Shown here piece by piece: positions 1-54,562 of a DNA stretch of 64,000 nt. Where the stretch lies: contig JBLDXI010000032.1 in the NCBI GenBank assembly GCA_047495785.1, forward strand, positions 2,666,001-2,730,000, read 5' to 3'. The DNA comes from Lepidodermella squamata (Eukaryota > Animalia > Gastrotricha). A model generated the notes under the pieces. The model had not been told where the DNA came from and did no database searches. It saw only the letters and a list, made by a program, of their open reading frames with translations. Position numbers and translations under genes: made by a program. Within the stretch, counting starts at the first letter, position 1, and every line of letters begins with the position of its first letter.

Positions 1-3000
1 GCCGAACAGCTAAAATCGGCTGCCAAGCTGTTAACGCTATCCAGATTAATTTCATCTGCAACGACAAGCACGTCGGCCCGAATGAAATTAAAACCATCGA
101 AGTCGAGGATGAAAAAACCGGACTTCGCGTTATGGAGGTTTGTTGCGATCAATTTTGAAAAAACCCAGCTTAATATTATTTTTTAATCGTAGAGTTACAT
201 TGTTCGTGATCGTGAGATGTTGGAAGAGCGCCTACAAGCGCAGTTGAGTTCCAGCACTCACGCGCCTTCGTCTTCGACCAGCCAAACCGCACTTGGCCCT
301 TACTGGTGCCAGTGCTTAGTTTGGAGCCTCAATGCCAACCCTCAGACCGGTCAACCCGACAGCCTGTACAGCCGGCGAGCTGTCGTTCATCTAGCGTGTA
401 AGTTCATTTTTCATGTCATCTGGCCCGCACTTCCTTATCTTAGATTGTCCGATTATTCCTCAAGTTAGTGTCAAAGCTTATAAAAATATTGCGCAAGCCC
501 TGTCACCATGTGTCGTGCTATTAAGGCAGATGCGCCCTAGCATTACTATATTGCGTGCGCGCGGCATTGGCGGAAAGGAAGGAAATTTGAGCCACTATAG
601 GCGCCTTTGCCAGATATCGCGTTTCACACCTTGGGCGCACACAGGCCACTGGCCGGTCAACTGGTTTATAGGTTAATTAGCCGGGCGCTTTCAAAGCGGC
701 GAACATGCATGCAACCGCCGCTGCCGCCATGTAATTGACCTAATAATCCTTTTTAATTTCATGCTTTTCAGACCTGAGAAAGAAGTTTGAACGCGAACCT
801 GTGCCGCAAAGAAGCGCCGTCGGCGGTGCGGTCTCATTCACCTGCTCGCCGCCCGAGGCCCTGCCAGAGCCTACGCTGCTGTGGTTTCGCGACAACCGCC
901 CAATCGAAGGCGATGGCCGTCGCATCATCGTCGACCAAAAACTTCGTCAATTGAGTATTTTAGAGGTTAGTTGAAAAAATTAAATCGATAAAAAATAATT
1001 AGGAAAAATTAAGAAACATTTATTTAAAATTTTTTTTTTGCTTTTAGGTGCGGCCTGAAGACCATGCGAATTACACATGCGTGGTTGAAAATGTGGCGGG
1101 TAAACGAATTTCGCCTCCCGCGCTGCTCGCAGTTACCCAAGACGGCGGCTGGTCAACCTGGTCGTCGTGGTCTCGTTGCGTACCAGACAGCGATCAGGTC
1201 GTTATCGATACCGAAAAATCAGCCGACTGCCAGTTGACCGGGCACCAGCGCCGGTTGCGAACCTGCTCGAACCCGGAACCGAAGCATGGCGGCAAGGCGT
1301 GTTCAGGCGACGAATTCGAGACTCAGTCGTGCTCGTTGCCATGCAGCGCCGCCACCCCGGCTAATACCCTGGCCGAAAAGGTCACTGTGAAGCAGGCGAA
1401 CAGTCAAGGGTGGTCGGCGTGGTCTGAATGGTCGGAATGCTCGCCAGCCCCGGAGTGTCGCCGAACGCGGCGGAGAACTTGCCTGTTAACCGACGCGTCT
1501 TCAGTCGGCTGCTCCGGGCTGAACAGCCAATCGATCTCGTGCGCGCCGAGTCAATGCGGCGTGCCTAGGTTGAACGTCAATTTCGACTCGACGACGCATT
1601 CGCTGATCGGCAGCCAGACCGTCGAACCCAGCGCGCAGCATTGGCACCCGGCTGAAACCGCTTTACTCGTCACAATCCCACTCTGCGGGGTGTTACTCAT
1701 AGTTTTACTCGCCCTAGTCGCTGTTTGGATTAAGCGGCGTTGGCAACGGCGTCGCCAGTTGAATGTGGTACTAGCCAGTACTGATTTCGTCTCCGGGTCT
1801 CGAGGGCTGAAATTCTTCGCGGGCAGTGGCAGCAATTCAATCGCGAGTAAGCACAGTGCCGCGTTTTGTTACACCGGCGTGCCAGGCCCGGCCTCCTCGT
1901 CATCAGGCGTTTCATCATCAGCCGAAGCCGTTCCGTTACGGCTAGCGAACACCTCGACCAGCTCAACAACAGAGGCCCCGGGCCGCCGGGTTGGTACTGA
2001 AGTTTTCATTGAAAACGGCAATTGCTACCCGAAATCGCGAGTGTCCTATGTCCCGCAGTCTGAGCCGCTCAGTCGCCGGTCGCCGCCTCGTAACCAGCCG
2101 GGTCTCATCGTGGTACCGAACAGCCATTTCGCGCCGGCTAGTAGTAAGGTGTCTAAACGCAACTATCAACACGACGCTGTGCCGCTGATCAACTCGTCTG
2201 AAATCGACAGCCCACCGTCGACGTCAACCAGCCCTGGTACGGCCTCGTTGAATCTGCGTAGTAACAACACGAGTCACATCACCCAGAATCACCACGGCTT
2301 TGTCACCCCGCCGCCTTATACCCCACCCGCCGCTTTCCCGGCCGAGTTCCCGAAACAGGGCGATGACCACCGGGTCGCCTGGTCGCAGGTCGCCCAGAAT
2401 CGCGACTCTGAAATCGCGCTACCCAGCCCGGTTAATTGCCGCCTTTTCGTACCAGCCGGGTTCTGCTACAACCAGTTGGGTGAGGCGTATCTAACCGCCC
2501 TGGTCGATTCGAATGAAGACACCTACCCTCGTCTTGAAGGCAGTCAGACCCTTCTATCGCCAGTTATCGAATGGGGCGTAGTTGCTGATCAACAAACGAT
2601 TATCGATGGGCAAAAGCCGGCGGTTTTGAGTTTCCCCCACTCAGCCGTTGCGACCAGTCTAGCGAATTGGGACATTGAACTGCTATTCAGCCCTGGTTCA
2701 GGCTGGCAAACGGTGGCTCGCGAGGACCAATCGAACTGCAACAGCCAGGAAACGCGTTTCCATCTGTCCGCGAATCGAGTTTTCGTCTTTACAAGGCAAA
2801 CAGGCCGTTTCACCCTGGTGGGCAGGCCTAGGCTAGCGAACCCGGCCGTTCAACCCGCGGCTAAACGGCTGAGTTTCGCCGCTTTTGTCCCGCGAAATCT
2901 ACTCTCCGGTTCACCGAACGACTGGCCGACTGAGGTTAACGTGTTGCTTTACGCGTTGAACGATAATGGAGTCGATCTGGCCGAGGCTGTTAGGGTGGAG

Positions 3001-3465
3001 CAGGAACTTGGGCTTACCTTGATAGCGCCGGAAGTTGTCGATTTAGGCTGCTCGGGTGACGATGGTCTGCCGGTTCTGAACTTCACCCACCCTGATTCGT
3101 CGGCTCACAACGACGCGAGTTGTTTAAGCGTTGAGGTGAACGAAGTTGCGACGCCGTGGTTTCTACGCGGCAGTGCAAAGCAGACCATGCCTCACAGCCA
3201 CGTTTGGTCGGCGACCTCCCGCTCGTTGATGCATTGTTCATTCACGTTTTCGCGTCGATCAAACTGCGGCAATAACTCGCCATTGAGTTGTAGCCTAGTT
3301 ATTCGCCAGTTGTCATCGGCTGTTGTCGTTAGAATCGACTGCACGCCTACAACGCCGTCGATGGCCTCGTCTTCGGTCAACCTCGAACCTCACATTGCCA
3401 TGCATACGTCTCACTGCGATGAGGGCGATGTCATTCTCTGCCGGCCTCAGTTCGCTTCGAAGTGA
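1..3465 (+). CDS. unc-5: UNC-5 netrin receptor, 5'-partial; exons <1-137, 193-397, 772-965, 1048-3465
   Basis: Spliced translation gives Ig1 (IGCQAVNAIQINFICND...GLRVME...YWCQC), Ig2 (YLRKKFEREP...FTCSPPEALPEPTLLWFRD...NYTCVVENVAGKR), two TSP1 repeats (WSTWSSWSRC; WSAWSEWSEC), a TM helix (LLVTIPLCGVLLIVLLALVAVWI), ZU5 (QTLLSPVIEWG...KPAVLSFPHSA) and UPA. GT-AG sites keep frame. Confidence 0.92.
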
Positions 3466-24075: not shown

Positions 24076-25580
24076 TCAAGCCAACGATAAACGATGTTGG
24101 CCAGCTTGAGGTTGCTGAGTGGTGGGACGTCGCGTGGATGCGCATACTTGACACGTAACGGCGAGGAAATTCAGAGCAAGACTTGTCGAATCTGTTGACT
24201 GCGAGCGCCAGTTCATGTGGACAGCCCCGCATCGACGAATTGATGCGGCGGTCATGCACAGTTTGGTGCAAACAGCGCATATGCATTGGTTTTCCAGCTG
24301 TGACACGATAACCTCAGGAATGTGTCGCCAATAAAACGGTAGTCTGTAATTACAGTAATAAAATTCATGATTCACCGGAAAAACAGTACTCACAAATTCT
24401 TAACGGTAGATCGAGCCGAAAATTCGAATAACGACGGTATGATTCGACCAAAAACCATAGGCTCAGCCGTGATTTTTCGCATAGTTTCCAAAGATGTGCC
24501 AGATTCTTCACTCGGATTAGAATTCAGCCCACTGATATCGAAATCAGCGTACAATTTGGTTAACTTGTTCACCCAAATTGTATTCAACGGATTTTTTGAG
24601 ATGTCAAGCGTGATAATCGAAGGAGGCACCGCATTAATCACCCTGATCTGGTTGTTGTTCAAAATCAGCGTGCGAACCGATTTTAAATTCATAGCAGATA
24701 TTGGTAACGAGATCAATTGGTTGAATGAAAGGTCGAGGCTTGTCAACTTGTTAGCGCGAGAAAAAATCTCCGCACTGATCGTTTCAATTCTATTCTTGGA
24801 CAATTTCAAAGTTGTCAGATTAGGTATTGATACCAGTTCACGAGGAAATTCGGATAAATTGCAATCCATCAATTCCAATGCAGTCAAACTAGCCAGTTGA
24901 TCAGACCGCGCGAAAGAAATGATGCGGCATTTTTCACACGAAAGTGATAAAACGTAGGTAACTCCTTCGCTCAATCTCTTCAGCACTTTTCCATGAATAA
25001 CTTCAGACTTCTTCAGAACAGAGGTTGCAATAGTTTGCCGACGTTTTGCCGGAACTGCGGGCTGTTCAGCAGGAGGTTGCATAGCATTCGACACAGCTCT
25101 TTTACCATTGCAGTTTTTCACTTTTGAGGCGGGAATTAGCCCTTGCTTTTCTTCAGGAACTGCGTTTTCTTTATCGCATGGATTAATTTTGCCCTTAGTA
25201 GGCAGTTGGCCAATTATGCACAAGTCAGAATTACCATTTTTCGGTGTAGACAAAGATCTCAAGTACTTGATGGCCTTCACGAAACGTTTCAATCCATTGG
25301 TGTCCTTTGCTTGAAGCATTATATCTTGAGCAGCTTTCTTAAAACGCAGAGTGGCTTTGCCTTCTTCGATGAATCGGTCGAAAATCGATGACAAATCTGT
25401 CACATTATAGCTTAAAATCAATTTGGAGACAAATTGCAGCTGAAGTAACCCGGTCTTGGTTAAGGTAAGAACGCCATATTTAGATTTGTCCTTGATCATA
25501 CCAAGCGTGCTTTTGTTATCCGATATCACTATTGAGCATGCTACGGTGATTTCCCCAGAGCATGATGTAATATTAGACAT
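24076..25580 (-). CDS. LRR1: Leucine-rich repeat protein 1 (CRL2 substrate receptor); exons 25580-~24394 and ~24343-24076
   Basis: N-terminal PIF1-like domain (IFDRFIEEGKATLRFK...DIML), LRRs (LTTLKLSKNRI, LTSLDLSFNQL, VRTLILNNNQI), BC/VHL box (IPSLFEFSARSTV) and a Cys-rich tail (CICAVCTKLC...CQVC). Confidence 0.82.
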
Positions 25581-29094: not shown

Positions 29095-32000
29095 ATGGCG
29101 CTAAATCTGGCCTGGATTTTGCGGCTAAGGTGGCGCTTGATCTGCATGGTCCGCCGGCAACCGCTTTGGTCTCTCGTTTCAATCGTCATAGGAGTCTGCG
29201 TTTTTACGGTTTTTCTACCAATTCTGTGGTCGGCTCGGTTATTCCAAGGGCGACATCAAGATTCGGCCGCTTTGAACAACGCATTTAGCAACCTGCCGCC
29301 TAACAAAACACCGTCGGCTTCTTCATCGAAAACCGGGTTTGTTTTACATTAGATAACCGTGTACCTTATAGTGTTAATTGCTGACTCGCGTTGTTTCACC
29401 TGAGGCCACACTGTTTTGTCGGCATGGGTTTACTTACAAATTGGTTTCATTGTTATCTGCCGGCCATCTGTTTATACAGTTTTGCGTGCGTGGCTAGCGA
29501 GCTAGCTATATCGATTGTGTTTAGCGCTTATCATTAACGCCTCGCCCGATGCTAACGCAGAGCGCATTATCAATAATATTATTTGTTTACTTCCAAGTTC
29601 ATCTAAGGCAATTATTACATTTTCGCTGCCCGAGAATCAAGTGAATAGTTTGATAGTGAGATAAGAAGATCTAGCCATTTGCGATGCAGAACAATTGTTG
29701 GTGCATTCGCGTAAGCTATGACTCATTTGATTAAGAGAATAGCCAAGAATAACAATCTGGGAAACGAAATTTGGGACAGGACAATTTTTCACTGTCGGCT
29801 TCAGATGGGTGCCAGCGTTCGACTCATCGCTGTCTATTTCAGCCGTTTAGCTGTCAAAGTGAAAAATTCGTCCAAAATTTAAAAAAAAATTGAAAATAGA
29901 AGAAAGCTCTGCCGTTTTTTCGAATTGAAAAAAATCATGAAAAAGTGATATTTTATGGTTGATGTTTTTATTGAGTGATTTTAAATGCCGACAGTTCGTC
30001 CCCGTTTTAAAATTGTAAATACCTCTGAAATTACCTAGACTTCATCCCCACAAAATTTACTTGAGAAACTGTGTTGAATTTCCAATTTTGTATTTTCCCT
30101 ATTTAAAAAAATATTTATTAACCGAATTTGTTAGTCATTTTTTTACATCAGATGCCTGGAATGTATCTTGGATGCAAACGTCTCTAATATTTGTTTCAAT
30201 TATATTTTAGGCGTCCTCAGTTGGCGTTTCAGTGCGACAACCCACCGTTAACCCTGCCAGGGTCACGTTCACCGCCTACCTCGACGACATCGACAGCTAA
30301 TCTAGTTGCGAATATTCAGAAATTCAAGCTGAAACCGCACAGCAAAGTGTTGTTACTTTTGCAGTCATCGCAGTACTCGCAACTCGCGACCGACCTTGTC
30401 GTCACCTTTGAATGGGCCAAAGTGCCTTACCGCGCCGAGCTAATCAAACACAGCCTGCCGTATCTCACGCGATCTGATCTCGGTAAATACGCCCTGGTCG
30501 TTTTCGAAAACGCGTCGTCCTACTTCGAAATGGACCTGTGGAATCGCCAACTTTTACACACTTATTGCCGCCAATTCGGCGTAGGAATTGCGGCGTTTGT
30601 ATCAGATCTACCCGGCGCGAATAATTATTACAAGTTCAAACACTCGCCTGATAGCAGTGATTATGTCGAGATTGAAAAATTGCAAAATTCTCCCCTAAGT
30701 GTGATATTGACGAATAACTCGGATGTGCTTCGAATATCGCGGCCAGGCCTTGTTTGGCAATTCGACGAAAAGCGACCAAGATTCAGTGAAACGTGGAATT
30801 ATTTCCGATTTTCTAACCAGTCTGCCTTTCGAATTTTGGCATCGGCAGCGCCTGAAGACCGTGGGCCTGCCGTGCCGATTGCGATTGAAGACCTCGGCCT
30901 GGTCGACGGCGTTCACCGGGTGCTATTCGGCCATCCCACCCTCTCGTTTTGGCTCAATCGCGTCCTTTTTCTCGACAGTCTTTCTCTGTTGCTATCGCCT
31001 TACGCAGCTCTCATCCCGCTCGAACGCTACCTCCAGGTTGACATTGACGACATTTTTGTCGGCTCGGTCGGCAAACGGATGACTGTTAGTGACGTGCATG
31101 AGTTGGTGGCGTTTCAACGTCGACTCCAGTCGAAGATCTCGCTTAATTTCAAGCTGAATCTCGGCTATTCCGGTGGCTATTTTCTGCACGGCGACGAAGA
31201 GGAAGATGCGGCCGATCGACTGCTGATCTCACTCGGCGCAAACTTTAACTGGTTCCATCACAGGTTAGCAGAAGGGATACATTGATAATTTATATAGACA
31301 TTTTAAAATTTTAATCAATACATAATTGATTTCAAATATGATTCGATTTTAAAAATCTAAAAATATACTGTAGCCCTAAGTGAGAGGGGAAGCGATGTCT
31401 TATCTCAAGCGGTAAAAAATGCTGAGCTCTACAACCTGTCAAGAAGAATAAAAAATCCGGAGAATTTCGTAGCTGGGGTAGCAGTGGCAGCTGGATTGGG
31501 AAAACCAGGTAAGGGTGGGGAATCCTTTACTCTTCCGCGTAAACAAGCTTTGAAACATGTGGCTTCTTCATTTAATCTTGACCAAATTATATTCTCACTA
31601 ATTCACTGAAAAGTATTATCAATTCAAACCTCCATTTTTGGCTTGTCTTACTGTCTTACCACTTGTCTCTCAAAACATCAGCACGCAAATTATTATTGCA
31701 AAAACCATGACTGGTAACAAAGCGACTAACCATCGTTTGATTGGTCGCTCCAAACATGTGGCGAATTGCCCAGAAATTTTTATGAATCTTCATATTGAAC
31801 CTAGATGGGCAGTCATAATACTCTCATATAATAATCTCATAGCAAACCAATTCAAATGAATAGTCATACTACTTGAGATTGTGAATGTCCTTGCTACTGA
31901 CCGTAATTTTAGCCTGTCTAGTGACGAAACGCGGGAACCTGTCTTGCCGCAAGCACCGAAACAAGAAATCGAGAGTCGCAAACTCGTTGTCGAGACGCTG

Positions 32001-35000
32001 GCAAAGTTTGATGATGGTAATACTATCACCGAGGTCGGTGGTAAATTCAAATCTGAAGCTTACGCTTTGAAAAAATAGTAGTTTTTCAAATACCCGAATA
32101 CCCCTCTGCAAGTCAGGGCCTCTCTTTTATTTGCAACGGTTAGGAGTGTTGGCAGGGCAGCACCACCAGCTGGCCACTGCACAATGATGTTGTGGTCTGT
32201 GGCGAAGTGATGCTGCAATATAACGACCCACACCACGAACCAAAAAGACGACATCTCATGCGTCGGCCGCTGTATGCACGCATGGGCGATCATTAGCTTG
32301 GCGGTCTTATCATCGACCTGCAAAGTCTGAGCTAGCTGGTGGGCGATCGGTATATGTGGGAATCCGGGAAGTAGCCAGTGGATTTGGAGGGCCCATAGTT
32401 GGAGTAGCGCCAACTCGGAAAATACATTCAGCGATCGGCGGAGGCTCAAGAGCTGATTATCGTACTGGCTCGGCGATAACCGAAGTAGTGGGATAACTGC
32501 GGGTACAGGAGCTATGTTCTTTGTTGATGGATCGGTGACAATAAGAACAAAGATCTCGCGCGAAAGTCTGATGTCCTCATCACAGGAGATTTCCACGAGC
32601 CCCGAAATCAATAAGAAATCAATAAGACCGAGATCTCGATTGAGACATCTTCTGGTATAGAAAAACGTCAAAATTTATCGAGAAAACATGCTGCGTGCCG
32701 AAAAGTCGCCATTGAAACAGTGCACAATAAAGGGCCGTTTGGTGATGGTGAGACTAGCCTAGGCTATTCTAGGCTATCTTGAAGCCAGGTCAGCGTCTAA
32801 GAGAGAAATCCAGATAGTGCAGGAGGCTATGTTGGCCTCCGTAGCTAAACGAAGAACAGTGAAACTAACAGCATCGCCATCGAATGTGAAACCATCGCCA
32901 CTGTGAAAGCTGGCAGTGCTGACAGTCGGGTTCTCGCTTGTAGGCGATTGTCCGGATTCATCATTGTCGCAGTCGGGGTGAAAGCGCTGATGGCATTGAA
33001 CACATTGAACCAGGGAAGATTCAATAACAACTTCAAGGCAAATGCAACAATGAGGCAGAGATTCTTCCATACCGAATTCAAATACAAAAAAGTTAAACAA
33101 AGATTGCAGAGCGAATGGCCAATGATATAATTTTGGCGATATTTAAGCTATACTTTACTTCCCGCCATGTTTTCGCGGCAAATTGCGTTGTCGTAAAAGG
33201 CCACTAGTGCTATTTTAGAGCTGTTATGTTGAGCAAAATACTAATAGTAACCGTACAAGGATTTTGACTGGTTATATGCGTTACGTTCTTCCGTGATATC
33301 GCGGATATTTTGTGGGCCATTTTAGTGAACAATTGTAAAATTTAGTATCGACGCTCAAATGTTTGAGCCTGACCTCAATTTTAGCGTACACAATGATTGA
33401 GTAATTCAATTTTTATTTTTAGTTGGCTTCATCGGAGGCCGCATTTGCAGAGCTATGACAAGATTGCTGAGGACATTCTGCTGAACATTGATTTTGCCCG
33501 TCGGCACTCGCTGCCACTCGACCGAAGCTATTCAATCGCCCCGTTCCATTCTGGCGTGTATCCGGTACACGAACCGCTCTTCTCCGCCTGGCACGATGTT
33601 CTAGGCGTTGTTGCTACAGCGACTGAACACTTCCCACACTCTAGGCCGTTGTGGAAACGGCGCGGGTTCATCCACTCGAGTAGTGGTATTAAAGTTCTAC
33701 CGCGGTTGCCTATTGGACTATTCACTCACACGAATTACTTCGACGAGTTTCCAGGCGGTGGAAAAAATGCTTTGGATTCGCAAATTCAAGGCGGTCTCTT
33801 ATTCAATACTTTCCTATTTAATCCGGTAAGCTTTCAAATAATGCCTAATTTTCTGAATCGAAATAAATTAAGGCGGATTTTTTTAATTACTGCTGTAACA
33901 TTGACCTAAAGTTGACTTAAATTGCTAATTTTAAGGTATTTTAAGGTGGACTTTTATTCGATTAATTACCTATTTTTAATGTTTTTTCTCCAGGTTGCTG
34001 TTTTCATGACTCATCAGTCCAATTACGCTCTTGATCGGCTGGCTGTCTACGCTGTTGAATCATTGGTCAATTTTGTTCAGTGCTACACGAGGCTGTCAAT
34101 TCGCTATCTACCGCCGTCTCACCTCGCAAATGTCTACTTTGCTCTATATCCGAACGACACAGACCCCGTGTGGACGAACCCTTGCGATGACCGAAATCAT
34201 TTGGCACTATGGTCGCCAAACAAAACATGCACGCAACTGCCGGATTTGTTGATTGTCGGCCCGCAGAAAACCGGATCGACAGCCCTAGCTCAATTCTTAG
34301 CGCTCCACCCTAAAACTGTCGTGAATTCACCGACGAAGCACGGCTTTGAAGAGATTCAGTTCTTCAACGATGCTCGTTACTATTTGCGAGGGTTAGACTG
34401 GTATCTATCGCTATTTCCTAGCCTACCGCCGCAAAATTTGGACGAAAGTATGCAACTGAGCCTGCCGGCTAATCGGTCAGAATTCGTGTTTTTCGAAAAA
34501 AGCGCGACATATTTCGACAACGAAGTTGCCGTAACTAGAATTCGAGCGTTATTACCCCGCGCGAAGATTATCGTGTTAATCGAAGACCCGGCTAAACGAG
34601 CGTATTCTTGGTACCAGCATCAGAAGGCTCGTGGCAATCTATTAGCCCAAAATGCGACTTTCTACGAGGTTTTGACGTTGAATTCGAAAAATGTGAATGG
34701 GACGTTGCTGAAATCGCTGCGCGGCCGGTGTCTTCACCCGGGCCATTACGCGCAGCACATTGATAAGTGGCTCATGTCATACTCGGCGACGAATATGTAC
34801 TTTGTCGACAGTGCCCAATTGACCAATGACGCGCCTTCGGTTTTGAATGAAGTTCAAAAATTCCTGAAAATCGAACCAGCCGTTGACTACTACCAGTTGC
34901 TGCGGTTAGATCGCAATAAAGGCTTCTACTGTGAAATTGATGCGAAAAACGCGAGTCGCGTGCACTGCCTCGGCAAATCGAAGGGCCGGAAGTACCCGCC

Positions 35001-35187
35001 GATGGACGAAGCGTCGCGGCAGTTTTTGTCCAGCTACTACCGGCCGCATAATCTGCGCCTGCTGACTGTCATGCGACATCTCGGCTATAGAATCCCGGCG
35101 TGGCTGAAGGCGGAATTTGCGGCTCCGAATGGCCGGGTCCTCAACAACGCTGCGCCCGAGCTGGAACCCGCCTCGGCCGCTGCTTGA
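29095..35187 (+). CDS. NDST: Bifunctional heparan sulfate N-deacetylase/N-sulfotransferase; exons 29095-29336, 30211-31263, 33423-33825, 33994-35187
   Basis: Type II TM anchor; deacetylase motifs VDIDDIFVG, WFHHSWLH (spliced) and APFHSGVYPVH; FMTHQSNY; sulfotransferase IVGPQKTGSTAL, FEKSATYFD, RAYSWYQH, CLGKSKGRKYP. Confidence 0.95.
31380..33200. mobile_element. Decayed TE-like insertion in NDST intron 2, with a PHD-like Cys/His fragment on minus (~32950-33060)
   Basis: CCICLEVVIESSLVQCVQCHQRFHPDC (partial PHD finger); several broken coding-like stretches; family not identified. Confidence 0.4.
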
Positions 35188-38061: not shown

Positions 38062-39010
38062 ATGGCAAACGCCGCAATTTTCCTGGCTCTAGTTTCACTG
38101 CAAGTTGCATGGGCCGCGGAAGATGCGAAATGCCCGGTTGGTGGCATGTCTTTTCCGGAACATTTCGAGGCAGAAATAACAGAGGATGCTAACCTTGATG
38201 TTCCCGCTCAACTGAGATTTCCATTCTTGGAAGGTGGATTGCAAGTATGTGAGATAATTTCGTTAAATTGCGGCAATTCACGATTCTTTCTAGATTTTTC
38301 TTCACCTAAGAATTCCGTGCAGTGGCCAGATTTCCGAGTACAAGTTTTGGACAGCGAAAAATGTGATAAATGGCCTACATTTAGCTGTTTTCCGAATTAA
38401 CGAAACTGACACCTCGGCTCAACTAATCTCCGACTTTTACATAAATGCCCAGACGACTAGACTAGCGCAGGGCGAGGAGGGCTGGATCAGCTCGCGACCG
38501 AATTCGCCTATCCAAGTCAAACAGGGCGATGTAATCGGCATGTTCTACGACCAACTAGGCGGCGAGACCAGCATTCGATCCCTTTCGCTATCTGTCGATG
38601 ATGTGGAAAATTCTTTTGACACCCTGGTCTACCTGACGTCGGCGAAAGACTTGGTCGACGGGTCGAAGGGCCATGTTTGGCTGGAAGAAGGCATCAAAGT
38701 CAACCGAGTTCCGGCCTTGTACCTAAAGCTCGAAGGCACGAAACCGAAGCAGAACCGCCCCGCCGCCATTCACGTGAAACACATCCCTCAATCTGTAACG
38801 GTTCAATGCGAGCAGCGCCCGTCCCAGTACCACTTATCCGGGCTGGTTTGCGATGGCGAGGTTACCCTGCGATATTTCTACCACGAGAAGACCGGATTTT
38901 GCCGCGAATTCATCCATTGTTCGATTCCTCAGGCGTCGGAAATCGCCGGGTTTTTGACGTACAAAGACTGTATGGTGACGTGCCGACGGAGTCAAAATGG
39001 AGTTGCCTGA
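38062..39010 (+). CDS. Secreted protein: unrecognised N-terminal domain + Kunitz/BPTI-like domain (paralog 2; intron ~38245-38293)
   Basis: Signal peptide MANAAIFLALVSLQVAWA; IPCSGQISEYKF...GLHLAVFR...VKQGDVIGMFYD...IRSLS...VPALY; six-Cys Kunitz-like tail (RYFYHEKTGFCREF.HC...FLTYKDCMVTC). Confidence 0.75.
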
Positions 39011-39198
39011 AATGTGAAGCATTATTATTACACGTGTCCGAATAATGAAAGAATTAGTGAAAATAAATTGTACGCACTCAATAACCTCGTAAAAATGGCC
39101 ACGCGATGGTTGTATCGCGTGCCGATTCTTTTTCAATATTTTGAAATTTTAAACCAGTCGCAGTTTGACATTTTCAACATTTACAGCAAATACAAGAA

Positions 39199-39788
39199 AT
39201 GAAGTCTCTGAAATATCTGATTTTATCTGTTTCAATCGCTTTGATCAGCCAATTCACAGCAGCTAGTAGCAGCGAGTTCACGTGCTACGTTTGCGAGAGT
39301 GAATTTCACAACACAACACAAGATTACGAGAGCGACAAATGCGTCTCGCCGATCGGTAAAATCGAACCGGCGCCGTGCCCACCGATGAAAGGCGGCGCTA
39401 ATGAAAAGTACGGCTGTTTGAAGATTTACACCGTTACGGATGCGCGGACTGAATTCAATCCTCATAAAAATTCGAACAGGTTTAGTACATGGCCGCTCGA
39501 AAATTAATTTATCAGTTCGGTCGAATGTTTTATTAGATACCTGCGAAAAATGTCTCGGCAGTGCGCTTCTTTTGTGGACCCAGTTGTCAAATGCAGCACA
39601 CAACATGGAGCTAACAGTCAAACTCTATCTTGGTATTTTATTTTTATTTTTTATAATATTTATTTTATTAATTTTTATCTATTAGCTTTTGCGACTCTCG
39701 TGACTGCAACTCCTCACCAGGCCGTAAAGGAGCTAATTCTATCCTGACTTTGGCGTTGCCAACATTGGCGCTATTCAGATTCCATTGA
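39199..39788 (+). CDS. Ly6/uPAR three-finger (quiver/sleepless-like) GPI-anchored protein, 3 exons
   Basis: Signal peptide, then CYVC...C...C...CLK...RQC...C...CFCDSRDCN and a hydrophobic C-terminus (ILTLALPTLALFRFH). Confidence 0.82.
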
Positions 39789-40074
39789 TTATCCGTCTTG
39801 GAGACTGAGCTAAATTATCCAAAATATATGAATTCGATGAATAAATATTTTAAGAGTTCGAGAGGTTCCATTCTGTCCATTCTGTCCGGTGTTTTTGTGT
39901 TCTTCACGAAAAGCTATTATCAACAATTATCAGTTGAGAAAATGTTTACGTCAAATTTGCTATCTTGCAAATGATAAAATTTGGTGAGGTCGCGGAGCTA
40001 GCGTAATCTTTTACCAGAGCCTACTTTTTTGGAGGTTAATTCGCGAAAACAGGCCCCAAGTTTCAATCTGTACC

Positions 40075-42029
40075 ATGAAGAGTCAACTTTATTTAATTTT
40101 CGTCATTTTTGCCCTACTCGCCCAAACCAAAGGTCTGCTAGAAATTATCGCTGATTTTCGGCTGATTTCGTTTTGAAAATAGGCAACAGTGACGAGGTCG
40201 ATGAGGGCTTCAGTGAAGCAGAGTCTTGCAATGAGCAACAGTATTCGGCTAATAGGCGGGAACACGTCGTAAGCTTTAAATATAAATACCAAAAACTAAA
40301 CGATTTCTATTACCTATCTAATTAATCTACAGCTGATGTATGACGCCCACTTTCGAGACACTGTTTACAACTTGGCTATCCCAGTTGACGGCCTTATTAA
40401 AGCTATCATTGATTCAGCTCCTTTTCAGCGGCTTCAAAGCATTCGACAAATGGCTATGGTCGCCAAGGTATATCCCACAGCTAAGCATACGCGTTTTGAA
40501 CACTCTATTGGGTTAGTAAAATTTTAACCGAAAATCCGTCTTAATATTGGATTGAATTGGTAGAACTTACTACTTGGCCAATCAGTTCATTATCAAGCTT
40601 CGCGAAACTTTACCCGAGCATGAGCGGTTCGAGGTGATATCCGAGCGAGACAAAACCGCAGTTGAAATCGCCGCGTTGTGTCACGATTTGGGCCATGGAC
40701 CTTTCTCTCATCTTTTCGAAGACGTCCTTAAAGCTAAAAACAACACATGGAATGTAAATCAAATAATATAGTTATAACAAGATTAATTTTCCCCCATAAC
40801 TTCAGCATGAGGCAGGATCCGAGGCAATGTTGCGCAGGGTGCTTGCATATGAGACAGTTCGTGAATGGCTAGCTAGGGAACCTCTTTTCCTGAAAACAGA
40901 TGCTGAAGTTGAAGATTACCTCATTTTCATCCGGCAACTGATTCGCGGGAAGCCGAGGAAACATGCCGCCTATTTTGCCGAAAAGCCCTTCCTCCTTGAA
41001 ATAGTTTCGAACCACCAAAATGGTCTAGATGTAGATAAAATCGACTATTTGAAACGCGACTTGCAATTCAGCCGCGGAATCACCGGCATCGTTGATCATC
41101 GCCGCATTTTCATTAACGCGAGGCTGATCAAGGATGACGAAGGGCATTATCAAATGGCCTTCCGAACTAAGGTTGCCGAGGAACTGGCCGATGTCTTCCA
41201 ATGGCGATACTACCTTCACCGCTACGTTTGCTTCCACCCAACCGTTCGTCTCTTGGAGCAAATGTATAAAAGCCATAGCTTTTATGGCTTCTTTAATAAT
41301 TTTGGTTATTTTTATAGGATGATTGATTTGTTTTTCGCTTCGGAAGAACTTGTCGCTAAAACTATGTCCTGGCCCTCGGATTGGATGAGCACGTTCGGAA
41401 CTGGGTCAGATTCAGTGGATAAGCTGATGAAGCTCGACGACGAGACATTCTTCTCGATAATCAAGCTCTTTGCCCCGGCAAATCACCCAGCGGCTAAATT
41501 GTATCACCGGCTCGAGCATCGATTGCTATACAAAAAATCATGCACAATGACGCTATACTCGCCAAAGGATGATGACCAGTTTTACAAGGCCAATTTTAAA
41601 GCTGAGGCTGACAAAAGTGAAATCGAAAGCCGCAAATATGTCATTGTGGTATGCGAATCAAAAACAGAAATGTAAATTCAGGAACTTTTTATTTTTAAAT
41701 TTTTTCAGGTTACCAGATTTCGATTTGGCAGCGAACCATCGGCGACAGCTCGCGAATTCAGATTGTTTTTGAAAGAGGAAAATCCGAAGATCTACCTTCC
41801 CCAAGAAGAGGTCAGTTGCCTTCGAAAATGTTGGAGTACGTATTTTGGAAAATCCTTTTTTCAGGATCTTTTCTACCAGCGCTACTCCAGCTTGAAGAAA
41901 ATCGATCAATACGCTCAAATTTACGTATTTTGGCGCGGTGATCTCGATGACCCACAGAAAGAAACCTTGGAGGACATTGTTTGCCCAGGTTTCGCGCGTA
42001 AAAATGACGCTGTCATGGAACAGTACTAA
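40075..42029 (+). CDS. SAMHD1: SAMHD1-like HD-domain dNTP triphosphohydrolase with predicted N-terminal signal peptide; exons 40075-40132, 40183-40268, 40333-40511, 40564-40753, 40806-41263, 41318-41648, 41709-42029
   Basis: [58 protein letters not shown]. The two upstream exons splice in frame and encode [20 protein letters not shown]|NSDE. Confidence 0.88.
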
Positions 42030-42391
42030 CACTGAATGAATTATGTGATGTTCAAATTTGATTGTGAACAGGAAACGATTTTACCTACCTAGTCATTTTT
42101 TACTCGAACAAAAATTAATTATAAAAATATTCCAAGAAAAGATTATGCGAGTTTGCTCAAATATTGAAGTTTACGGCCATCGGCGACAAGGTCGAGCATA
42201 GGCATGACAGCATTGCAATCGCGTGATTTTCTCAAGTATTTGTTGCATTACAATTTCTAAAAAGAGAGAACCCGCCAGTCAAATTGCTTTGAAGGTTCGG
42301 CACATAGATTTTCCCCGATTTCTCTGCTCGTGTAGTGTGCAAGGCCACAGACCGAGCACCTAAACAAAAAGGCCAGATCCATGTAGAGAAA

Positions 42392-42427
42392 GCGGGTTTA
42401 CGCGTCCAAGTCGGCGTGTAAACCCGC
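42392..42427. repeat. GC-rich inverted repeat (hairpin)
   Basis: GCGGGTTTACGCGTC-caagtc-GGCGTGTAAACCCGC: 15-bp stem with two G-U-type pairs. Confidence 0.6.
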
Positions 42428-47206: not shown

Positions 47207-47911
47207 ATCAATAAAATACCTCTACAAGGCATTTAGAAAGGCAAAAGATAGAGGAATAAGTATAGCTTAGTTGAGCAAGCGTAGGCTGACGCATAGTGTA
47301 TATTTGAAAAAGTGAGGTGGGCATTAGAATAAGGTCACTGACAAGTGACAAGGTAAGTTGGGTATCGAATTGAGGTCATCTCGCACCTCAAAGCGATCAC
47401 GCCAGCTGCGCGGTGGACGCGTTTCTAAACGCCGCATGCTTGCGGCAGCGCTGTCCTAAAAAATACTGCGGCTGAAAAACATTTATGAATTAACTATACC
47501 AAGTTTTTTCAAAATATCACTTCTGGAAAGATTAAGATTTACAAGGTTGAAATTTGTGCGGTAATGCAAAAGCATAACGCGCTATTTTTTTGAAAGGCTG
47601 ATTTTTTCAAGTTTTCAGCGGTTTTTCAGTCATGTGATCTGAGCTGTGCCGGCGCCAGAGAGCAGACTGCGGACTCCCAGGAATCTCGAGTCTTGGGCCT
47701 TACAATTTTTAGGTTACTTCAGACATAAATCCACAATAAATAGTGACTGCCAAGGCGCGCGCCTGGATAAATCTAGCAACGGAGTCTTCCGGTATCCTTT
47801 AAGTGTACCTACCGTATTTCGCATTACTCATGTCCTATTGCTTTGCGCATTTTTTATTTGGATGCCATTGTCGTTTCCTTGTGTCACTTTAGTCCATTGA
47901 ATAGACGAAAT

Positions 47912-49165
47912 ATGATTTCGCGACATGCGCTGTTACTTCGCAGCGGGTGCTTTCTGCGTTGCACAGTTGCATTTGAATCCGGAAATCTTAGACAGTTGCA
48001 TTCTGGAGTTGTTCTCAATGCGCAATCCGCGGAAAGCAGCAAAGATTCAAAGTCGGAATCTTCTTCAAAAGCTGTCAAAATCAGCAGAGCAATGAGAGAG
48101 TATGTTCGCAAGGCGGAAGAATACACAACTCTGATTGGCAACGAGCAAACTGACTTTGAATTGGGCAAGCGTCACTTATCAAACATTATGGGCTTTGAAG
48201 GTGAAGATATTTCTCAGCAACAAATCGACGCTGCGATTTCATATTTATTGCCATCCGGTTTGTTTGAGCCTCGTGCTCGTCCAATGATGAAGCCGCCAGA
48301 AGAAATATTTCCCAAACGCAAGCCGGCTCAGTTTGGCATTGACGGCAGACCTTACCACTTTTTATTCTACACTGGCAAACCCAACTTCTATGAATTGATG
48401 AATGAAGGCGCTATGGTATTGACTCGGTTGAGCGAAGTCTCTCGTAGAGCCCCGATAGCTCAAGGGGACGCTGAAAAACAGAAAAGAGGATTAGATTTAG
48501 CGGGTTGGTTTTCCATCTCTCGATTTCTTTCCTGTCAACAGATTTTCAATTTAGGTAGCGATTGGATTGACCTGCCATCTCTACGTTCGATGACTTTGGA
48601 AAATATTACTGAAGAGGATTATAAGGTTTTCGTCGGCTTGCTGTCTCGAATTGCTTCGCATCCTAATGGCGAAACAGCCCGCCAATTTCTGTTCCGATTC
48701 CGCCAACAGCTAACTGCAGAAAAAGCATCACAGCTCCGCCTACCAGTTTTTACTGATGCGGAAGGGAAGCAATATGTTGATAGTTTTGGAAGCCGCAAGT
48801 GGGCCCGCGCTGACGTTCGTTTATTTGCCGAAGGCACAGGCAAAGTGAAGATCAATGGGAAGTCACTGCTAGAATATTTCCCTGGGATATACGAACGTGA
48901 GCAAGTTTTGTTCCCCCTTCAGTTCACCGGATTGTTGGGAAAGGTTGATTTTGTCGCTTCGATCAACTCAGGAGCAAGTGGAAGCAATGCAGAAGCTGGA
49001 GCGTTGAGGCTAGCATTAGCCCGCTCGTTATGCAGCCTTTGCCCCGACGATGTTGTCGACTCATTGCGTTTAGCTGGTTTGCTCACTCGTGATAACCGTC
49101 GTAGGGAACGCAAGAAGCCTGGTCAAGTCGGTGCCCGCAGGAAATTTACCTGGGTCAAGCGTTAA
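47912..49165 (+). CDS. MRPS9: Mitochondrial ribosomal protein uS9m (51-nt intron 48504-48554)
   Basis: Transit-peptide-like N-terminus; FELGKRHLSNIMG, YLLPSGLFEPRARPMMKPPEEIFP, GLLTRDNRRRERKKPGQVGARRKFTWVKR. Confidence 0.95.
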   Translation: MISRHALLLRSGCFLRCTVAFESGNLRQLHSGVVLNAQSAESSKDSKSESSSKAVKISRAMREYVRKAEEYTTLIGNEQTDFELGKRHLSNIMGFEGEDISQQQIDAAISYLLPSGLFEPRARPMMKPPEEIFPKRKPAQFGIDGRPYHFLFYTGKPNFYELMNEGAMVLTRLSEVSRRAPIAQGDAEKQKRGLDLAGWFSISRFLSCQQIFNLGSDWIDLPSLRSMTLENITEEDYKVFVGLLSRIASHPNGETARQFLFRFRQQLTAEKASQLRLPVFTDAEGKQYVDSFGSRKWARADVRLFAEGTGKVKINGKSLLEYFPGIYEREQVLFPLQFTGLLGKVDFVASINSGASGSNAEAGALRLALARSLCSLCPDDVVDSLRLAGLLTRDNRRRERKKPGQVGARRKFTWVKR

Positions 49166-51958: not shown

Positions 51959-54562
51959 ATGGGAAACAGTGACACGAAATTGAGTTTCAGAAAAAGTGTC
52001 ATAGAATTGACTACAAAGACTAAACCGGTCGATGCAAGCGATGAAGCGTTTTGGCAGCAATTTTGGACTACCCCAGTACCCAGTGTTCAAGACATGTTTG
52101 TCCTCATCCCACCCGCCGAAATTCGAGCATTACGCGAAGAATCACCTTCAAATCTAGCGACGCTGTGCTGTAAAGCAGTTCAGCGCCTAGTCCATGCAGC
52201 TGACGGCAATTGCGTAACGACAAATGACCAGCAAGCGGCGTTGAATGCGGTTCGTTTACTGACTCGAATTTTGCCGTATTTGTACGAAGATTCGGACTGG
52301 CGTGGGTTTTTCTGGTCGACAACCGGCGGGAGTACCGGGTCGACGGTCGACGGGAAAGCGGATGATCAAGTTTTGGCGAAATCGCTGCTAATGGCCATTT
52401 CAGACCTGTTATTCTGCCCGGATTTCACTGTTTCTACCCCGAAACGACCGGCTGGCGCACCGGAGGTTGCTGATGATATTCGCTCCCTCGACAGTTGCGA
52501 GTACATCTGGGTCGCCGGGGTTGGTTGCGTGCAGGCTCAACCTAGCACTAAGCAGCAGGAACAAAATCGAACTGAGTTATTACGACTTTTATTAGCTTGC
52601 TGTTCAGAGCCGGTCTATCTGACTGCCGGAGACCCTCGCGCACAGGACAACCCTTGGATTCGCTATTTCACCTCTAAAAGTAATCGGCATGTTTTGCCCC
52701 TATTCGCTTCGCTGTTGAACACCGTCATTACCTATGAGCCAGTTGGCTATATGCCGTATAACCACTGGCTGGTGACTGATCACCGCGAAATCCTGGTTGA
52801 AATGGCAATTCAAGTTCTGAGTGTTTGCCTCGACTATTCACTGCCGCCTGATGTTCCCGAGGCAAGTTCCGGGCCGAACCCGGTTGACTGCGACAATTTA
52901 TTCGTGCATTACCTGGCCCGGATCCATCGCGAGGAAGATTTTGAACTGATTATGAAGGGTTTAGTCCGGCTTTTGAACAACCCGCTAATGCAGACCTATT
53001 TACCCGGTTCTGCAAAGAGAATTCGTTTCCACCAGGAAATTTTGGTGTTATTCTGGAAGTTATGTGATGTCAACAAGAAATTCTTGTACCACACGTTGAA
53101 AACAAGTGAAGTGCTGAACATCTTCGTACCGGTGCTGTACTTTTTGAACGACGCAAGAGCTGATCAAACTCGCGTTGGACTGGTTCACGTTTGCGTTTTC
53201 ATTTTGTTGATGCTGTCGGGTGAGCGTAATTTCGGCGTCCGCCTTAACAAGCCTTACACGCAAAAATTAGCGATGGACATACCGATTTTCAGCGGAACTC
53301 ATGGCGATTTGCTGGTTGTCAGCCTTCATAAGGTTATTTCAGCCGGCCATTCGCGACTTCAGCCACTGTACGAATGTATGTTGACTGTTCTGGTCAATGT
53401 TTCGCCATATCTGAAGACACTGTCCATGGTATCAGCGAATAAATTGCTGCATTTATTCGAGTCATTTTCCTCGCCGTCATTTCTCTATTCGTCACCCACT
53501 GCCCATCGCTTAGTATTTTACCTGATGGAAATCTTCAACAATTTGGTGCAGTATCAATTCGATGGCAATGCAAATCTTGTCTACTCCATGATTAGAAAAC
53601 GACAGATTTTTCATAATTTGGCGAATCTCGCGGCGTCGCAGGATGGTATTAGCCGGGTTTTAGCTGGTCGAAGAGGCGGAGCGGCAATTCAGGCAACAAC
53701 TTCGCCAGCTATTGCAGCAGTTGCGGTCGCTGAGAGACCCCCTGGTACAGCAAGGCCGAGCGAAAGTGGCAGCGCAGGTCCCCATGTCGAACCTCCAGCT
53801 AGCCCGGCCTTACTACCGGGTACAGCTAACGAGCAAATCGTTGAAGGGGCCGTTGTTCCAACTGATGCTCCGTCAGGTTCGATCAAGGCGTCGCTAGCAT
53901 CCACGCCTCAGTTATTGACAATGACTGAGAAGCAGACGTTGGATGGTAGCCGGTCGTTGCCGCCCGATGCGGCGGCAGCTAACCAGCAGGTTGAACCACC
54001 TACGTCGCCAAGCCCGCATGGTAATAACGCGCCTCTCGTTAGGCACCCATCGACTGGATCGTTAGCTTCAAGCACCCATGGCGCTCTAAGCACCACCCAT
54101 TCGTTAGCCGGGCAATGGCAACCTACCCCAGAGTGGGTCCAGTCTTGGAAAAAGAAGCTCCCGCTGCAAACTGTCATGAGATTGCTTCAAGTTCTAGTAC
54201 CTCAAGTCGAGAAGATGTGCGTTGAAAAGTAAGTTGTTGTATTCCTTGGTTCATGATTTTCAATTTATATCCGGTGGATTTCAGGGGGTTGACTGATGAA
54301 ACCGAAATCATTCGCTTCCTGCAATCTGGAACGCTGGTCGGATTATTACCCGTACCCCACCCCATTCTCATTCGCAAGTACCAACCGAATGCTGGAACAT
54401 CCGTTTGGTTCAGGACCTACACCTGGTAAGAATTTTCGTAGCATCACATTTTCATTCTCAAAATTGCTGGTTTTTAGGGGCATAATTTATATCAGAAATA
54501 CGGACCCTCCAATATGGTACGATACGGACGTTAAAATGTTCGAAATTCAACGCATTTCATAA
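51959..54562 (+). CDS. HID1: HID1 dense-core vesicle/Golgi protein; exons 51959-~54228, ~54284-54425, ~54478-54562
   Basis: MGNSDTKLSFRK (myristoylation motif), ESPSNLATLC, LSGERNFGVRLNKPY, QYQFDGNANLVYSMIRKR, LPLQTVMRLLQVLVPQVEK, DPPIWYDTDVKMFEIQ. Confidence 0.96.

Follow-up and report, generated by a model that had tools for sequence, protein, structure and literature searches.

A SAMHD1-family gene with a predicted signal peptide and a rare sugar-pocket variant in Lepidodermella squamata

The gene described here lies in a 64,000-nucleotide stretch of Lepidodermella squamata DNA (GenBank assembly GCA_047495785.1, contig JBLDXI010000032.1, positions 2,666,001 to 2,730,000 of the forward strand), which is referred to below as the window. 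It occupies 40075-42029 on the plus strand, consists of eight exons and encodes a predicted product of 522 amino acids, a SAMHD1-family HD hydrolase. The explanation that we consider best, at a probability of roughly 55%, is that the product is a SAMHD1-type triphosphohydrolase of the secretory pathway, belonging to an unsampled and fast-evolving bilaterian lineage and having a repacked sugar pocket. An earlier examination of the letters alone (the sequence-only reading) had singled out 40333-41263, which corresponds to exons 3-5 of this gene. It proposed a secreted enzyme that has lost its ribose gate and its need for guanosine triphosphate (GTP) and that turns extracellular adenosine triphosphate (ATP) or other ribonucleoside triphosphates (rNTPs) into nucleoside and triphosphate, for scavenging or for purinergic quenching.

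Two sequencing runs were available: X1, from 2015, is complementary DNA (cDNA) whose contigs carry the SMART cDNA adapter, and X2, from 2024, is DNA and covers introns and exons alike. All seven introns are of the GT..AG type and 50-64 nt long, and each was confirmed as a joint in X1 cDNA contigs. A single X1 contig links exons 1, 2 and 3, its shorter sides being 74 letters (at the exon 1-2 joint, 40132->40183) and 88 letters. The supposition that a signal-peptide exon is joined to the enzyme core in the mature mRNA is confirmed by this contig. RNA depth is nil across 39912-40025, so the transcript begins shortly before the ATG at 40075; this is the first ATG of the transcribed part, with none further upstream there. 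Introns 3 and 4 shift the frame, intron 6 contains a stop and intron 7 (54 nt) is in frame. No tandem SAMHD1-like paralogues were found within the window, which holds this one SAMHD1-like gene. The exons are as follows, with residues of the product given beside their human SAMHD1 equivalents.

Exon 1, 40075..40132, plus strand: start codon with A at -3; signal-peptide-like N-terminus (19 residues, then G).
Exon 2, 40183..40268, plus strand: acidic linker of 28 residues without a Pfam match, standing where other family members have the SAM domain or an N-terminal tail; X1 joint 40268->40333.
Exon 3, 40333..40511, plus strand: start of the HD core, with phmmer matches to SAMHD1 chains; ATG of M50 at 40336-40338; D75, Q80 and Q83 correspond to D137, Q142 and R145, Q87-M88-A89 to Q149-L150-G151, and R102 and H105 to R164 and H167.
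Exon 4, 40564..40753, plus strand: HD motif (an 11-residue string), in which H148, D149, H152 and H157 correspond to H206, D207, H210 and H215; X1 joints.
Exon 5, 40806..41263, plus strand: catalytic and AL2 residues, aligned with SAMHD1 of human and mouse; H172 corresponds to H233, D246, D248, K249, Y252 and D256 to D309, D311, K312, Y315 and D319, R305 and H309 to R366 and H370, and C313-F314-H315-P316 to Y374-Q375-H376-K377; the AL2 residues are D268, R271, R291 and K293.
Exon 6, 41318..41648, plus strand: C-terminal lobe; R392 and K396 correspond to R451 and K455, the AL1 phosphate binders, by a weak local alignment that agrees with the family alignment (R in 86 of 93); sub-threshold Pfam HD_assoc_2; X1 joints 41263->41318 and 41648->41709.
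Exon 7, 41709..41810, plus strand: X1 contig 6 spans 41480-41647 and 41708-41808, joining to about 41865.
Exon 8 with stop codon, 41865..42029 (stop at 42027-42029), plus strand: hydrophilic C-terminus ending in NDAVMEQY.

When PDB chains were searched with phmmer, the translated exons matched the SAMHD1 of human, mouse, Caenorhabditis elegans (6pwy) and Rhizophagus (9mr6) with E values of 1e-9 to 1e-10, and exon 4 matched the Pfam HD domain (PF01966) with 25.8 bits (cutoff 22). BLASTP of the spliced protein against 150 representatives, taken from an exhaustive HMMER search that covered 1.84 billion proteins, gave 30-38% identity over 280-470 amino acids (E 1e-45 to 1e-55). The C. elegans and mammalian SAMHD1 proteins are 35% identical (PMC10485159), so such values are normal for SAMHD1 compared across phyla. 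Residues were placed on the human sequence (7ujn, full length) through an ungapped match of exon 3 residues 17-59 to human 127-169 and a match of exon 5 residues 59-154 to human 293-386, with two single-residue gaps, as well as through a family alignment of 93 representatives spanning the core, in which a column was called conserved at 80% agreement or more.

The metal-binding motif H...HD...D (H167, H206, D207 and D311 in human numbering) is present. So are the catalytic and triphosphate residues R164, H210, H215, H233, K312, Y315, D319, R366 and H370, all of them in family-invariant columns, and Q149, D309 and H376 are intact too. Eleven of these (R164, H167, H206, D207, H210, H215, H233, D311, Y315, R366 and H370) had been called kept in the sequence-only reading, and the alignments confirm them. 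There is no N-terminal SAM domain, its place being taken by the predicted signal peptide and the acidic linker of exons 1 and 2; outside vertebrates this domain does not define the family (PMC12042053, PMC10485159). Judged by its residues, the product is a SAMHD1-family HD-domain triphosphohydrolase with an intact catalytic centre. From this conservation, the metal centre (H105, H148, D149, D248) would still cut a nucleoside triphosphate (NTP) to nucleoside and triphosphate, aided by the intact triphosphate and catalytic residues R102, H152, H157, H172, K249, Y252, D256, R305 and H309 and by the 3′-OH readers Q87 and D256.

The changes are concentrated elsewhere. R145 is replaced by Q83, L150 by M88, G151 by A89, Y374 by C313, Q375 by F314 and K377 by P316, and the printed alignment of exon 3 to 9mr6 has the same R to Q, L to M and G to A. 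When the N-terminal register is anchored on the conserved Asp (D120, here D57) of the family alignment, K116 becomes A53 and N119 becomes R56, and the DPIHG motif reads DTVYN. The strings quoted in the sequence-only reading (AHFRD and a further 18 letters) are all present in the sequence. Its assignments of R145Q, L150M, Y374C, Q375F and of the K116/N119 segment as AHFRD are correct, none being misplaced in the multiple alignment, and G151A has to be added to them.

The protein matches the family consensus at 63 of the 72 conserved columns, including every catalytic residue. The nine misses are S76 (T138S), Q83 (R145Q), M88 (L150M), A89 (G151A), V132 (I to V), A140 (C to A), L278 (V to L), M288 (I to M) and C313 (Y374C). 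Apart from the C to A change at A140, the non-conservative ones hit the arginine of the allosteric site AL1 (R145Q) and both sugar-pocket walls (L150M, G151A, Y374C). Nine misses put the protein near the family's 75th percentile, so this is not a generally decayed sequence. Among the 93 representatives, F at Q375 and Q at R145 occur once each and M at L150 twice, the commonest states being L at 150 (82/93), Y at 374 (82/93), R or K at 145 (86/93) and K or R at 116 (66/93).

A second haplotype (or subgenome), about 5% divergent at silent and intronic sites, was found over 39000-42400 of the window in both runs, with the same divergent variants recurring in the cDNA of 2015 and the DNA of 2024. 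The list of differences covers 15 exon sites, and 32 more differences in these 3.4 kb are outside it. Fourteen of the 15 are synonymous third-position changes, where 21% synonymous would be expected at random, and the remaining one is L5I in the core of the signal peptide. Three further synonymous changes, including one in the codon for H233, come from the letters CG and CACGAA, which lie between two splice joints. With 17 of 18 differences synonymous, the gene is under purifying selection. Intron 5 carries seven substitutions and two indels in 54 nt. The codons for Q83, M88, C313 and F314 are unchanged on both haplotypes (X1 and X2; divergent contigs 10 and 13). Pseudogene-like decay, which the sequence-only reading had named, for orthologues, as an observation that would speak against it, was not found in the haplotype comparison, which shows purifying selection instead. 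A pseudogene or an artefact of the gene model is rejected in view of the cDNA joints together with the 17 synonymous differences out of 18. The gene is an expressed and divergent member of the SAMHD1 family, kept by selection and probably functional.

The N-terminal 20 residues have the composition of a signal peptide: a basic n-region with Lys, an uninterrupted hydrophobic core of 12 residues and small residues at -3 and -1. Cleavage is predicted after T18 or G20 and would be followed by the very acidic 28-residue linker. In a hydropathy scan the peak was at residues 1-20 and no second segment was hydrophobic enough for a membrane span; inspection of the C-terminus revealed no KDEL-type retention signal and no glycosylphosphatidylinositol (GPI)-type signal. 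Variation in exon 1 is limited to one synonymous change and L5I, the sole non-synonymous difference between the haplotypes, which stays hydrophobic. A simple scan of the 150 homologues detected no other convincing signal peptide, two further matches looking like gene-model artefacts, and nothing relevant on secreted or signal-peptide-bearing SAMHD1 homologues was found in the literature searched. M50 stands seven residues before the conserved Asp (the D120 equivalent), at the point where SAM-less homologues such as P0014 and P0016 begin. M50 is the likely ancestral start, before which the short 5′ exons 1 and 2 appear to have brought in a cleavable signal peptide followed by the acidic linker. 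The main transcript would route the enzyme to the secretory pathway, either for secretion or for a compartment of the luminal, granule or lysosome type. We infer this routing, though on good grounds.

The tight deoxyribose pocket built from L150 and Y374 is not kept, the protein having M88 and C313 at these positions; the same M/C pair occurs in two other representatives. Methionine has a volume similar to that of leucine. The clash with a 2′R hydroxyl or fluorine of ribonucleotides has been assigned to L150, while Y374 together with Y315 contacts the 2′S face (PMC5207538; bioRxiv 10.1101/296624). Since M at 150 is not smaller than L, and the neighbouring G151 is changed to A, no part of the 2′R gate has shrunk. 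The C. elegans enzyme ZK177.8 has the smaller Thr (Thr78) at the L150 position; it hydrolyses the arabinosyl analogue of cytidine triphosphate (ara-CTP) and rejects cytidine triphosphate itself (rCTP), the backbone keeping the pocket tight (PMC10485159). Human L150V/A and Y374F/I/A are inactive on deoxyguanosine triphosphate (dGTP) (PMC5207538), and human R145Q, a loss-of-function allele in Aicardi-Goutieres syndrome (AGS) and chronic lymphocytic leukaemia (CLL), abolishes oligomerisation and activity (PMC8843919, PMC8497992). With the human single mutants dead, the logic of single residues predicts lost activity and not a new specificity.

What had been said of the pocket was therefore right in one part: L150M and Y374C are real and unusual, but the exclusion of 2′-OH sits on L150 and not on Y374. 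The further step from these substitutions to acceptance of rNTPs is not supported, in view of the size of M150, of the rejection of rCTP by the worm enzyme with its Thr and of the inactivity of the human mutants. Published precedent makes conversion of extracellular ATP to adenosine unlikely, and the default expectation for the sugar would be deoxy- or 2′-modified NTPs.

C374 is present in 8 of the 93 representatives and M or F at 150 in four, all four of which also have C374 (Fisher p = 2.4e-5, relatedness ignored). Parsimony on a weakly resolved tree gives about eight state changes for C374 and five for M/F150. Among the carriers of the pair are P0030, a SAM-domain protein of Scleropages, and P0062 (locus L005), which is derived from a transcript and lacks a signal peptide, so the pocket variant is not tied to secretion. 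From these comparisons M150/A151/C374/F375 looks like a coupled, compensatory repacking that recurs in the family, the residues at 150 and 374 facing one another, and not like an opened ribose gate. Several teleost SAMHD1-like paralogues carry C374. The pairing of M or F at 150 with C374, possibly compensatory, seems to be undescribed in the literature searched.

Ten allosteric residues are kept (D137, Q142, V156, D330, R333, R352, K354, H376, R451 and K455), which argues against a discarded allosteric site. Within AL1, where D137, Q142, R451 and K455 are retained, R145 to Q and K116 to A are the only unusual changes. Elsewhere, F157Y is the commonest state of the family, and F337N, N358E and K377P fall in widely varying columns. 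Most non-vertebrate SAMHD1s are without a SAM domain and have a poorly conserved AL2, and in the fungal enzyme strict activation is circumvented (PMC12042053). The sequence-only reading had thus in part noticed the ordinary non-vertebrate condition. Its description of R145Q as a loss-of-function AGS allele agrees with the literature (PMC8843919, PMC8497992), whereas the ten retained residues speak against the independence from an activator that it derived. The allosteric pocket probably still binds nucleotide at the subunit interface, with base reading at AL1 altered through R145Q and K116A.

The exhaustive HMMER search of 1.84 billion representatives gave no match above 47% identity and no self-match. 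Identity to the best match anywhere was 37-47%, in the most conserved part of exon 5, and the nearest named proteins were teleost SAMHD1-like paralogues and an insect SAMHD1. Scanning JGI metagenomes with exon 5 yielded no orthologue, and the ENA metagenome contigs of a relative of the host (L001-L004) contain no SAMHD1-like gene, the synteny breaking upstream. In the tree the protein has an end branch of 1.69 against a median of 0.55, among the longest, and no supported placement. Horizontal transfer, suggested by a weak grouping with metagenomic sequences, was rejected: the gene has seven spliceosomal introns. A second gene of the window serves as a guide to the lineage. The intronless HID1 gene at 51959-54229 on the plus strand (HID1/dymeclin family, Pfam E 2.7e-212) has its closest relative on the same ENA scaffolds, at 77% identity by BLASTP and 83% in the tree alignment, with shared MRPS9-HID1 synteny, and is about 54% identical to the HID1 of all named animals, echinoderms, tick and mollusc among them. 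In the HID1 tree the two proteins share a stem of 1.44 that falls outside every group sampled and forms a long, isolated branch of the bilaterians; the fast-evolving lineage of the host has no annotated relatives. The long branch of the SAMHD1-like protein is by this comparison probably an effect of the lineage, its divergence being lineage-wide and not specific to the gene.

Several other accounts of this gene have to be weighed. The extracellular rNTP hydrolase of the sequence-only reading draws on the signal peptide in the mRNA, on the intact catalytic centre and on the fact that the rare substitutions hit residues of the sugar pocket and the arginine of AL1. Moreover, hydrolysis by a fungal SAMHD1 can be separated from allosteric activation (PMC12042053). 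One may also reason that rNTPs are the sole abundant extracellular NTPs, so that a secreted enzyme acting on deoxynucleoside triphosphates (dNTPs) only would have little obvious substrate. Opposed to it are the 2′R gate, where M150 stands beside an alanine and Y374 faces 2′S (PMC5207538; 10.1101/296624), the worm Thr78, which still excludes rCTP (PMC10485159), the presence of M150 with C374 in homologues that lack a signal peptide as well as in a SAM-domain protein, and the ten conserved allosteric residues. We regard this account as improbable. The same low standing applies to its broader form, a new class of ecto-nucleotidase in which a secretory SAMHD1 would strip NTPs, possibly ATP or other rNTPs, in one step, with an M150/C374 pocket and an AL1 site re-tuned or dispensable.

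Alternatively, the gene may encode the ordinary intracellular dNTPase of the lineage, with the product made from M50 by way of an alternative 5′ end, or the hydrophobic N-terminus may be a membrane or organelle anchor. M50 coincides with the start point of SAM-less homologues, and the organism, with one SAMHD1-like gene in the window, is expected to retain an intracellular dNTPase. Yet exon 1-2-3 is the sole 5′ structure in the cDNA contigs, no loose end being reported at 40333; the first AUG is in good context (A at -3), and exon 1 has changed only by one synonymous and one conservative (L5I) substitution. As for an anchor, a hydrophobic core of 12 residues is too short. We consider this possible but unlikely, and would say much the same of the particular route by which a start at M50 could arise, namely trans-splicing of a spliced leader onto the exon-3 acceptor at 40333, with the ATG 3 nt downstream, exons 1-2 then belonging to a minor or differently localised isoform. 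A catalytically impaired pseudo-enzyme with some other role, for instance in binding nucleotides or nucleic acids within a secretory compartment, would accord with the degradation of DPIHG to DTVYN and with the human R145Q, L150V/A and Y374F/I/A mutations, each of which abolishes dNTPase activity (PMC8843919, PMC8497992, PMC5207538). However, all metal, catalytic and triphosphate residues are kept under strong purifying selection, which is unexpected if catalysis is dispensable, and C374 recurs about eight times in the family, suggesting a viable state. This alternative appears to us quite doubtful.

The secretory triphosphohydrolase with a repacked pocket has points to its disadvantage as well. 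The secretion call rests on inspection of the sequence, and no orthologue was found, by HMMER, in the ENA contigs of the relative or in JGI metagenomes, with which conservation of the signal peptide across species could be tested. The mature protein has five cysteines, an odd number, and one N-glycosylation sequon, which is atypical of extracellular proteins. Nor does a tetramer that assembles allosterically fit easily with an extracellular fluid poor in nucleotides. The tree-aware test of coupling between positions 150 and 374 had no power, there being two independent pairs on supported branches. Finally, the inactivity of human R145Q, L150V/A and Y374F/I/A (PMC8843919, PMC5207538) suggests by analogy that activity is not guaranteed.

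To our knowledge, SAMHD1-family enzymes have been described only as regulators of dNTP pools in the nucleus or cytosol. SAMHD1 itself is of relevance to antiviral restriction, Aicardi-Goutieres syndrome and cancer-drug metabolism. Compared by sequence, the present protein is notable for a predicted signal peptide unique among 150 homologues, for the rare M150/A151/C374/F375 pocket and for an AL1 site without R145 and K116. If secretion is true, triphosphohydrolase chemistry has been put to use in a new compartment. The protein is also a natural variant of the L150/Y374 pocket and the R145 site, where we take each of these single changes to be lethal to activity in the human enzyme, and the coupling of M/F150 with C374 bears on how a deoxyribose pocket is built. 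If the enzyme is ordinary and dNTP-specific, it represents a modest case of N-terminal exon gain in an unsampled phylum.

Other genes in the window were also noted. The upstream neighbour at 39199-39783 on the plus strand (exons 39199-39479, 39537-39632 and 39686-39783), both introns of which are seen in X1 cDNA contigs, encodes a Cys-rich protein of 151 amino acids with its own signal peptide. Exon 1 has no Pfam match, but a CxxC...CN pattern and a hydrophobic C-terminal tail make the protein Ly6/uPAR-like and probably GPI-anchored. An open reading frame at 38363-39010 on the plus strand has a C-terminal, sub-threshold Kunitz/BPTI match (E 0.0014, 19.2 bits against a cutoff of 21); the Kunitz-like, Ly6-like and SAMHD1-like genes would then be three adjacent genes for proteins of the secretory pathway. 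Domains of NDST (heparan sulfate N-deacetylase/N-sulfotransferase) extend over two long open reading frames at 30191-35187 on the plus strand. Ordinary animal genes include ZU5-UPA at 1048-3462, an LRR1-like gene at 24390-25577 on the minus strand and MRPS9 at 47843-49162.

Human and mouse SAMHD1 (7ujn, 4bzb, 5ao1) share with the protein of the window the fold family, the metal, catalytic and triphosphate residues, the 3′-OH readers Q149 and D319 and most phosphate binders of AL1 and AL2 (D137, Q142, R333, R352, K354, H376, R451, K455). The latter differs in having a predicted signal peptide and acidic linker and no SAM domain, in the substitutions R145Q, K116A, L150M, G151A, Y374C, Q375F and K377P, and in an overall identity of about 30-38%. 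C. elegans ZK177.8 (6pwy) is likewise SAM-less and likewise substituted at the L150 position (Thr78), so this position can vary (PMC10485159). However, it has Tyr at 374 and the D/Q/R triad of AL1, is activated by dGTP/GTP, rejects rCTP and has no signal peptide. The SAM-less Rhizophagus irregularis SAMHD1 (9mr6), the best PDB match for exon 4, provides a precedent for uncoupled hydrolysis and a divergent AL2 (PMC12042053), but is cytosolic, has no signal peptide and retains R (R42), L and Y at the three positions.

Closest in the pocket are the C374 homologues, teleost SAMHD1-like and transcript-derived proteins (P0030, P0041, P0050, P0082, P0122, P0062 and P0007), for which no biochemical characterisation was found in the literature searched. 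P0030 and P0062 share M150 with C374, P0041 shares C374 with F375, and P0062 also has P377. They are 31-37% identical to the protein of the window by BLASTP (P0062 is 40% identical over 245 tree columns) and are not orthologues; they differ in keeping R145, in lacking a signal peptide and, for P0030, in having a SAM domain. The likeness to ecto-nucleotidases (apyrase/CD39, CD73, ENPP) is a functional analogy only: if the idea of an extracellular enzyme were true, the outcome would be the same, NTP to nucleoside. The fold and the chemistry are unrelated, since those enzymes remove phosphates stepwise or as pyrophosphate, whereas SAMHD1 chemistry frees intact triphosphate.

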